Shown: positions 19,001 through 22,000 of the stretch, in pieces
Position numbering within the stretch: the stretch's first letter is position 1
Layout: the number at the start of each line of letters is the position of its first letter
Assembly (NCBI GenBank): GCA_950097015.1
Contig: CATNEN010000038.1
Location: 30,070,001-30,134,000 of the forward strand
From: Macrostomum hystrix
Lineage: Eukaryota; Animalia; Platyhelminthes
Reading direction: 5' to 3'
DNA: 64,000 nucleotides
The notes under the pieces: generated by a model
Told to the model about the DNA's origin: nothing
Databases searched by the model: none
Seen by the model: the letters and a program-made list of their open reading frames with translations, nothing else
Translations under genes and position numbers: made by a program

Positions 19001-22000
19001 ACTTCCCTTTCTAATCTCTTCCCTCTCAAATCTCTTCTCCCTCTTTAATATACTATTTTTCTCGTGTCTTCCCTGTCTAATATTTTTTCTCCGTAATCTG
19101 CGATATCCCTAATTTTTACATTCTCTACTCGTAACGTCATATGCATCTCGTCTCTTCTATTTTTCTGCTTTCCATCTCCTTTGCTCTTTGCTTTCCCGTT
19201 TGTCAAAGCTCCGTACAATGTCGTCCACTCACCCTGTCAAGCGAGATGACGTAATTCTTCTTCCGCACTAGCTGGGCAATTTGCTGCTCCAGTTTCAGCC
19301 ACTTCAGCGGCACAACCTCGCCAATGTAGGGCTGCGTACGGATCACGGACTCGCAGTGGTGTCTGAATCTGGCGAGCTGAAACACAATATAATTTTCTTT
19401 TCATTTGAGTACCGAGCTAGACAAAAAATATTCTTTAAAAAGCAAAACACATTTTCGACGAACCAACCTTATTATCTTCGAGGTCCTCGTCAAGATCTAG
19501 AGCGTAGAAATTCGATACAATGTTGGAATAGTACGGCTTGTACTGAAGAACCTCGCTGATTCGCAGAAATATTTTAGTCACAGCTGCGTCTACATCAGCG
19601 GGCGTGGCACCCAGACTGCCGCGGTGAGTTCCAACCAGGAATATTGGTGGAGATGCTGGTGACTCAGTCTGGGCATCGTCGGCTGAATCAATGTCCTGCA
19701 GCTTCTGTTGCTGCTGCTTCTGTTAATAATAATAATAATAATATTAATAATTGCAGAAGGGCTGCAGGCAATGGCACATCATTTGGTGACACTAGACCCG
19801 CAGCCAGCGAGGAGGCAATTCTGCCCATTTCGCTGACTCCTGAGCACACACGCACACAGATACTGTACGCAGGCACACGCTCACACAGGTGTGTACATCT
19901 GCCCTGACTTTCTCATCGTCAGGCAGTGTACACTCTCACTGTGCCATGGAGGTAAATTAGAAAAATTCGTGTTCTCGCCCCGCTCGGGGGGAACCTTAAT
20001 GCGCGTCAGACCGCTCTGGCACTCACCCCTCTCTGCTGTTTCTGTTGCTGCTGCTGCTGCTGCTGCTGCTGCTGCTGCTGCTGCTGAATAGTCTGCGTGT
20101 GTACAAGACTAAACCAGTAGTCCATATAGTCCAATAGGCTGAATCCGCTGCTAACATTGCGGCTATAGCTCCGCCGATCGTCGTCAGGACCACGCGGAAA
20201 CGGCACCTCCGTATCGCTGTCCAGATCGCAGCGGAGGTCGAATACAAACACATAAACAGCTCGATGAGTTAAGAACATCTGGTGCACCGTGTGATACAGC
20301 GAATGCCCGTTGAAGTCCCAGATATTCAGCCTGACTTTGCGTCTGGTGGCTTCGGGCGGCTGCTTGTCGGCTAGGACGGAGTCAACCATGGCAGCCACTG
20401 GCAGCGGGACCGCATTCAGTGGCGAGCTTCTGCCGCCAGTCAGTCTGGGCCTGATCATTCTGGAGGTTAGGTCGCCACTGACGGAGAGTAGGGAGGAGCC
20501 GCCGAGACTGGAATCCAATTCGTTCGTGTCAGCAGCAGCTCCGGCCGATGATGAAGACAGCATTTGAACCATGTTCTCGGCGAGGGCTGAGTTCACCTCG
20601 TCTGGGTTGGAATGCGGGTGTTTGAAAATAGGGGTATAGTAGGATTTTTTATGGGGTCCGCCAATATTTAATTGCTCTCACCCATGTATAATTACTCTCA
20701 CCTATCTTTAGTTACTCTCACCTATCATTAATTACTCTCAACTATCCAAAATTAATCTCACCCATCAATAATTACTCTCACCTATCTTTAATTACTTTCA
20801 CCAATGTATAATTACTCTCACCTATTTTTCCTGTGACCCATCGAAAATTACTATAATCTATCTATAACCCCTTTTATACCAATCTATCATTACTCGCACT
20901 TATCTATTACTCTCACCCTCTCCATACTCTCAATGGTGTAGCCTAACTGTGTGTGGGCTATAAATACATATGCAGGTTAATTAGGGCGACATATAGCTTG
21001 GAAAACACAAGTTCTATTAATAGCTTAAAACACGAAACAATGTATGCCGAACTAAGACAATAAACACCAACTAATTAGGATGACAGAGAGTAGATTTTAC
21101 GACTCGTAAGATCAAAGAAATGCGAAGCCTGTATGGGGAAAGTAATGATTTTTAGCTGGTTTGTTTGGCTACCAAATTTTTATCGCTCGAAACATCTCTA
21201 GATGATAATGACATTGGAGACAGGTGATAGTTAGAAGATCTGTTTGAGAAATTAGAAGATCTAGATGATGGACACGAGTATCTAGATGATGTACACGAGT
21301 ATCTAGATGATGTACACGAGTATCTAGATGATGGACACGAGTATCTAGATGATGTACACGAGTATCTAGATGATGTACACGAGTATCTAGATGATGGACA
21401 CGAGTATCTAGATGATGTACACGAGTATCTAGATGATGTACACGAGTATCTAGATGATGTACATGAGTATCTAGATGATGTACACGAGTATCTAGATGAT
21501 GTACACGAATATCTAGATGATGTACACGAGTATCTAGATGATGTACACGAGTATCTAGATGATGTACACGAGTATCTAGATGATGTACACGAGTATCTAG
21601 ATGATGTACATGAGTATCTAGATGATGTACATGAGTATCTAGATGATGTACACGAGTATCTAGATGATGTACACGAATATCTAGATGATGTACACGAGTA
21701 TCTAGATGATGTACATGAGTATCTAGATGATGTACACGAGTATCTAGATGATGTACACGAGTATCTAGATGATGTACACGAATATCTAGATGATGTACAC
21801 GAGTATCTAGATGATGTACACGAATATCTAGATGATGTACACGAATGTCAAGGTGGTGTACGCGAGTATCTATGTTTAATTACCATCATCGAGAAAGGCT
21901 TGCTCAGTTTCTGTTACGTTGCCACCTCGAGCACCGCCACCGCCCGCGGCTGTCGACGAGGAGCCGACGACAGCGTCAGTCGCTGACTCCAGATCCATCA

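Follow-up and report, generated by a model that had tools for sequence, protein, structure and literature searches.

The ROCO gene of Macrostomum hystrix appears to have gained an intron from a SINE. Within the window analysed here (the whole 64,000-nucleotide stretch of contig CATNEN010000038.1, to which all positions refer unless otherwise stated), we put at roughly 70% the probability that a young SINE inserted in the poly-Q exon of this gene is removed from the transcript as a 307-nt phase-0 intron, with its donor supplied by the head of the element and its acceptor by the duplicated target site. The origin of new spliceosomal introns is an old question, and the documented sources are mostly DNA transposons in protists and fungi. 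The present case, in an animal gene, concerns a young intron accounted for base by base by one retroposon copy, the duplication it made and at most three extra 5' bases, and the genus includes the laboratory model Macrostomum lignano.

The host gene was recognized as a ROCO gene by its Roc GTPase domain (PF08477), with the motifs DFNG and LVGTHR, and is read from the minus strand. Upstream of the intron, the ROCO exon at 20027..20602 (minus strand, 192 codons) encodes part of this domain, with a score of 36.7 bits for Pfam Roc PF08477 against a cut-off of 27. Its 3' end carries, in the minus-strand reading, a poly-Q tract and the residues KQQRG, the last codons being ...CAG AGA GGG at 20027. 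The intron itself (20026-19720, minus strand) is 307 nt long, lies in phase 0 and runs from GTGAGT to AACAG; it is situated in the poly-Q loop, with the DFNG and LVGTHR motifs on either side. The ROCO exon downstream of it (19468..19719, minus strand, 84 codons) opens with AAG CAG CAG and contains the LVGTHR motif of the Roc domain. Translation of the minus strand shows both flanking exons to be free of stop codons and to share one common frame, and the spliced junction predicted from the sequence is ...CAGAGAGGG|AAGCAGCAG... at 20027|19719 (minus strand). The initial annotation had proposed that splicing keeps the frame and adds a net 15 nt (RG + KQQ) to the mRNA; our reading of the two exons yields the same gain and the same frame. 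If the 307 nt are instead left in place, a TGA is reached after 6 codons. The empty site in the poly-Q exon was rebuilt by removing the element together with one copy of the duplication (...AAACAGCAG then directly CAACAGAAG...), and the resulting frame is open for 214 codons on one side and 87 on the other.

The first copy of the target-site duplication (AACAGAAACAGCAG) is exonic and lies at 20033..20046 (minus strand, 14 nt). The second (AACAG|AAGCAGCAG; 19711..19724, minus strand) is divided by the predicted junction, with 5 nt, including the acceptor AG, on the intronic side and the last 9 nt opening exon 2. Compared as 14-mers (20046-20033 and 19724-19711), the copies are identical at 13 of 14 positions, the sole difference (AAA versus AAG) being synonymous for Lys, and they border the element directly save for at most 3 extra 5' bases ahead of its G-run. 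A 14-bp duplication at these positions, and an acceptor AG drawn from its second copy (AACAG| at 19724-19720), had both been claimed at the outset, and both claims hold, the former within a low-complexity context: a 15-nt unit, CAACAGAARCWGCAG, is present three times, and an alternative duplication register of 20 nt with 2 mismatches was found by script. Since the 14 nt lie in a repeated 15-nt unit and a second register exists, the duplication alone is weak evidence and its length is ambiguous. The strong evidence for a SINE intron is what fills the space between the exons, namely only SINE between donor and tail, and only AACAG between tail and exon.

The head of the SINE, in its GTGAGT variant, occupies 20002..20029 (minus strand) and places the donor, G|GTGAGT, at 20027|20026. 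Immediately upstream and overlapping it, the six bases AGAGGG (20027..20032, minus strand) comprise 1-3 extra 5' bases and the G-run with which the SINE opens, and they form the last two codons of the exon (Arg-Gly); other copies of the SINE open with GGGGGT or GAGGGT immediately after their own duplication. The proposal that the intron opens within the SINE head withstood a pairwise alignment against the consensus of GTGAGT-head copies, evaluated with 2000 shuffles. Nucleotides 1-28 of the intron scored 42 (shuffle mean 17.5, maximum 29.5), a score that 0 of the 2000 shuffles reached, and nucleotides 29-83 scored 29, which was attained in 15 of 2000 shuffles, in an order collinear with the consensus. 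The A-box-like motif of the intron copy carries a G-to-C change, and its GGTCTGACGCG head variant is shared with another copy (L060).

Next to the head lies a rearranged middle part (19954..20001, minus strand), in which 48 nt stand for about 120 nt of the consensus, with three deletions (11 nt, the 8-nt B-box core and about 50 nt) and about 8 substitutions. These 48 nt (20001-19954) are private to the intron copy, being unique in the genome within 3 mismatches. Internal deletions in the same region occur across the family, with at least 15 nt absent from 17 of 71 copies and the B box absent from 6 of 71. About 60 nt covering the B box had been described in the initial annotation as diverged or replaced; an altered stretch is indeed present, at 48 nt, and the B-box core is deleted from it, but it is collinear with the SINE. 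The remainder of the element consists of a SINE body of 202 nt (19752..19953, minus strand) and a (TTA)n tail with one irregular TTAAT (19725..19751, minus strand), which abuts AACAG. In the genome search, the SINE-derived 3' 228 nt of the intron matched more than 850 genomic copies at 93-97% identity. The (TTA)n tail probably serves as the U/A-rich tract of the intron, and perhaps it also contributes the branch site. A separate suggestion, raised by the uniqueness of the first 83 nt in BLAST searches, was that the first 79 nt represent old-intron sequence or the head of a different SINE; this was rejected because the words of the head are too common for a BLAST search and because the stretch is collinear with the family.

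The whole intron, then, is SINE from head to tail plus 5 nt of the duplication. No non-SINE base (0) lies between donor and tail, and the intron is essentially an entire element with part of its duplication and without older intron sequence, as in introners. SINE copies inside introns are common here (e.g. 51321-51685), which would make it conceivable that an intron already existed at the site and that the SINE merely landed in it. We regard this as very improbable, given that not one leftover intron base is found, that the head begins just 3 nt upstream of the donor, with 5 nt between the end of the tail and the exon, and that the flanks consist of the 14-nt duplication and a frame that is continuously open once the element is removed.

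With insertion into the exon itself as the preferred reading, the properties of the SINE family were assessed in the assembly (220 Mb, 42 contigs). The head region matched more than 2100 candidate copies genome-wide, and exact heads numbered 494 for the GTGAGT form (GGGTGAGTGGCAGAGCGG) and 925 for the GTCGGT form, against 0 for reversed controls. The family therefore totals at least 1,419 exact heads, and lower-bound counts give several thousand copies. Within the window, the head pattern occurs at 3 sites where 0.05 were expected. Two reference copies with a GTCGGT head are found there: a full-length copy at 51321..51685 (plus strand), flanked by a perfect 12-13-nt duplication and located inside an ordinary intron, and a copy with a 16-nt internal deletion at 6381..6735 (plus strand), downstream of a 483-aa open frame. 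Among 33 aligned full copies, 3 carry the GTGAGT head in place of GTCGGT. A typical copy is about 365 nt long, starts with a G-run, contains A- and B-box-like motifs and a body of about 200 nt, and ends in (TTA)n; the duplications vary in length from 7 to 20 nt. Transposition is indicated by the many copies and their target-site duplications, and the family has the attributes of a SINE in being short, non-coding and of high copy number, with a defined 5' end, a simple-repeat 3' tail and variable duplications. Both an A-box-like and a B-box-like motif are present in the consensus head; since neither ARAGORN nor Rfam (E values up to 1) detected a tRNA in the head, these motifs are termed tRNA-like only. 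Rfam matches of the SINE body to microRNA families fell far under the thresholds and were taken as chance. The SINE body at 19755-19974 was also recovered, with 0-1 differences over 81-143 nt, from runs X1 and X2, which belong to two differently labelled organisms of a 2024 study and from which the flanking ROCO exons are absent; the family thus extends beyond the organism of runs X4-X7.

The 202-nt body of the intron copy has 4 differences from the family consensus (2.0%), 1 of them a subfamily marker, and an unbiased sample of GTGAGT-head copies had a median divergence of 5.4% (range 1.5-16.5%), from which it follows that the intron copy is young. As GTGAGT is a standing head variant carried by copies of all ages, the donor arrived ready-made with the element. 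The initial annotation had supposed that GTCGGT was changed to the consensus GTGAGT at this locus, a supposition that does not survive the genome-wide counts, in which the GTGAGT head is an inherited variant. The 5' third of the intron copy is altered far beyond what an age of 2% would lead one to expect, and its rearrangement probably arose at or near insertion.

Donors of a related form also occur nearby. The next intron of the ROCO gene (19377..19467, minus strand) is 91 nt long with the boundaries GTTGGT...AG, and RNA contigs from two runs show it spliced out; donors of the GTYGGT type are thus functional in this genome, a point relevant to a possible donor role for the commoner GTCGGT head. 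A further sequence of this kind, GATTTG|GTCGGT, is present at about 37430.

The mechanism that we propose would begin with the entry of a young copy of this abundant SINE into the ROCO gene by target-primed reverse transcription, in sense orientation. The target would have been a CAG/CAA-rich stretch encoding a variable loop of the Roc GTPase, of which 14 bp would have been duplicated. The extreme 5' end of the copy, GGG|GTGAGT, would then provide a consensus splice donor, and the first AG past the (TTA)n tail would be that of the second duplication copy (AACAG|). Recognition of this pair by the spliceosome would remove the element as a 307-nt phase-0 intron, keeping the frame and leaving 15 nt (Arg-Gly-Lys-Gln-Gln) in the message.

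Sequence runs placed on the locus bear on this scheme. In runs X4 and X5, contigs join 19376 to 19468, skipping 19377-19467 with GT..AG on the minus strand, and this spliced joint identifies both runs as RNA, although none of the runs is catalogued as such. The RNA contigs cover 19228-19376, 19468-19695 and 20095-20602 at a depth of 6.5-7.6. Over the copy-specific bin of the intron (19975-20029), the depth is 0 in X5 and about 2 in X4, where the contig responsible belongs to a different copy of the SINE. Spliced RNA lacks the copy-specific part of the intron, which shows that the transcripts do not contain the element. Read placement masks the repeats at 19696-19756 and 20031-20094, so the exact junction lies outside the placed reads, and it is in the sequence that the splice sites are read, the donor from the element and the acceptor from the duplication, with the junction within masked repeats. 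We infer that the RNA comes from the SINE-bearing allele, as we infer the AG used, the exact junction and the branch site.

These data can also be viewed as the product of a recent, possibly polymorphic and disruptive allele that is not spliced at all, in which case the transcripts would come from a SINE-less allele and the assembled allele would encode a truncated ROCO protein. The youth of the copy (2%) means that an intact downstream frame says little, the stop after 6 codons on read-through and the position of the junction within masked repeats are compatible with such an allele, and the RNA could derive from animals without the insertion. We nonetheless consider this account unlikely: the donor sequence, GTGAGT, is perfect, and the AG that comes first beyond the U/A-rich tail keeps the frame. 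The runs contain 63-70% of the words of the stretch, and their exon pieces show 0-1 differences, in keeping with an origin from the same line.

Splicing of the SINE through other sites would take the form of an in-phase downstream AG (with an exon start at 19716, 19713, 19710 or 19695) or of a mixture of tandem acceptors. All seven AGs from 19720 to 19696 share one phase on the minus strand, so that the frame is kept whichever acceptor is chosen, and the placed piece of the RNA contig ends at 19695, a position named as an alternative in the initial annotation and also the edge of a masked repeat. Splicing normally uses the first AG past the branch region, however, and the contigs extend past 19695 by 66 letters in X5 and 165 in X4 (overhangs that fit no path well), thus carrying at least 66 letters where 45-54 would be expected for an acceptor at 19695; such alternative splicing therefore seems improbable. 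Removal of the SINE between its own GTGAGT and the AACAG of the duplication remains the preferred reading. The ROCO case further suggests why CAG-codon repeats tolerate insertions of this type, as every AG lies in the same phase.

Protein comparisons were performed by single exons rather than with a joined model. The only close relative in the representative protein search was a 297-aa fragment from Macrostomum lignano, UniRef100_A0A1I8GDZ1, which was compared as a protein fragment alone. This fragment matches only the ROCO gene in the assembly and does so exon by exon, at 56-87% identity, and is therefore its ortholog. To the left of the insertion site the ortholog aligns up to ...FSLVH, and it resumes to the right of the site, with ten Gln and PLEA in between and no Arg-Gly; its identity with the downstream exon (19468..19719) is 70%. 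Exon 2 alone returned no matches as a protein query, and the M. lignano fragment, used as query, returned only itself and a distant tube-worm protein.

The frequency with which SINE copies become introns was estimated from a sample of 79 other head-bearing copies, 42 of which had a recognisable duplication, by scanning for an open frame across the reconstructed empty site. A long open frame, comparable with that of the control, was found in none of the 79, the best case having 53 codons on its shorter side, which is about the chance level, and the result places a rough 95% upper bound of about 4% on intron birth per copy. A CAG/CAA-rich 5' flank precedes only 3 heads genome-wide, two of them, besides the ROCO copy, in a non-coding context, and no other insertion of the family was found in a CAG tract. 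The expectation that this SINE has made many introns genome-wide thus finds no support in the sampled copies, and the supposed preference for CAG-rich exons finds no further example among the heads with such a flank. Nor did the sample contain what characterizes introners at the level of the family, i.e. many similar copies serving as introns in unrelated genes. Taken together, the 0 of 79 and the lack of another CAG-tract insertion describe an ordinary SINE that occasionally becomes an intron. It is doubtful whether the GTGAGT-head variant (about 500 exact heads) is a true animal retroposon introner, with repeated clean exon-to-intron conversions in Macrostomum and a donor kept because it makes insertions into genes survivable; if it were, SINEs would be added to the sources of intron gain in Metazoa. 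Locus L018 (G000:C34:1664969-1668188, about 1294-2047, minus strand) has a SINE, flanked by a perfect 13-nt duplication, within some 60 codons of open frame resembling a Myb/SANT-like protein (...NWSMAELKALQDAV...); this candidate is possibly another young exon insertion.

Described introners are mostly DNA transposons, as the initial annotation had stated, with about 82% being TIR DNA transposons (Gozashti et al. 2022, PMC9860276; 2025, PMC12130899), and non-LTR retrotransposons account for 5% of classified introner families in the 2025 survey (PMC12130899). The texts of PMC9860276 and PMC12130899 contain no mention of SINEs or of flatworms, and our literature search found no paper linking introners and Macrostomum. 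The ROCO intron is like an introner in that it is young, consists of the element and part of the duplication, and has one splice site borne by the element and the other by the duplicated target; it differs in that most copies of the present SINE do not form introns in coding exons (0 of the 79 in our sample did).

In the DNA-transposon introners of Micromonas and Aureococcus that Huff and colleagues reportedly described in 2016, the duplication is said to complete a splice site. The division of labour is the same there, with one splice site brought by the element and the other by the duplicated target, but those elements move as DNA by cut-and-paste, make short duplications of fixed length and number thousands of intron copies, whereas the present element is a retroposon with a variable duplication of 7-20 nt and a simple-repeat tail. 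Single-locus introns derived from retroposon or transposon insertions are known from plants, including the rice catalase SINE case and maize Ds. These share with the ROCO intron a single insertion into a coding exon that is spliced out and tolerated; they differ in their plant hosts, the host here being an animal and the consensus donor being present in about one third of the copies of the family. In the exonization of Alu and other SINEs, the spliceosome likewise uses splice-site-like motifs within the element, but the direction is opposite: exon sequence arises there from part of a SINE lying in an intron, whereas here an exonic SINE becomes an intron and only 3-6 bases are exonized. The ROCO SINE intron is a clear case of a known but rarely documented route of intron gain and not a new kind.

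Several further observations were made on the elements and genes of the region. At 51305-51700 of the window (plus strand), a full SINE copy lies 2 nt past the GT of an intron donor (CACAG|GTAAGT...) in a gene resembling Cys-loop receptors; the perfect duplication of 12-13 nt that flanks the copy begins within GTAAGT, and the donor survives only because the duplication restores it. At locus L097 (G000:C38:19632325-19635351, about 1400-1500, minus strand), the SINE adjoins an element of another type whose head is clearly tRNA-like (...TAGTGGTTAGAGC...GGTTCGATTCC...). This neighbour looks like a second SINE family and lies just past a GTGAGT donor. The 483-aa open frame upstream of one reference copy (4664-6115, plus strand) is composed of two similar halves; in both, a SET-like stretch (...GRYVNHHP... 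and ...ARFINHHP..., respectively) comes after a Cys-rich motif. Lastly, the introns of the ROCO gene are full of long minisatellites (13060-14023, 16282-16791, 17467-19037, 21259-21872, 23384-24228 and 25065-26163), among them an array of 98 copies of a 16-mer and one of 127 AGAT units.
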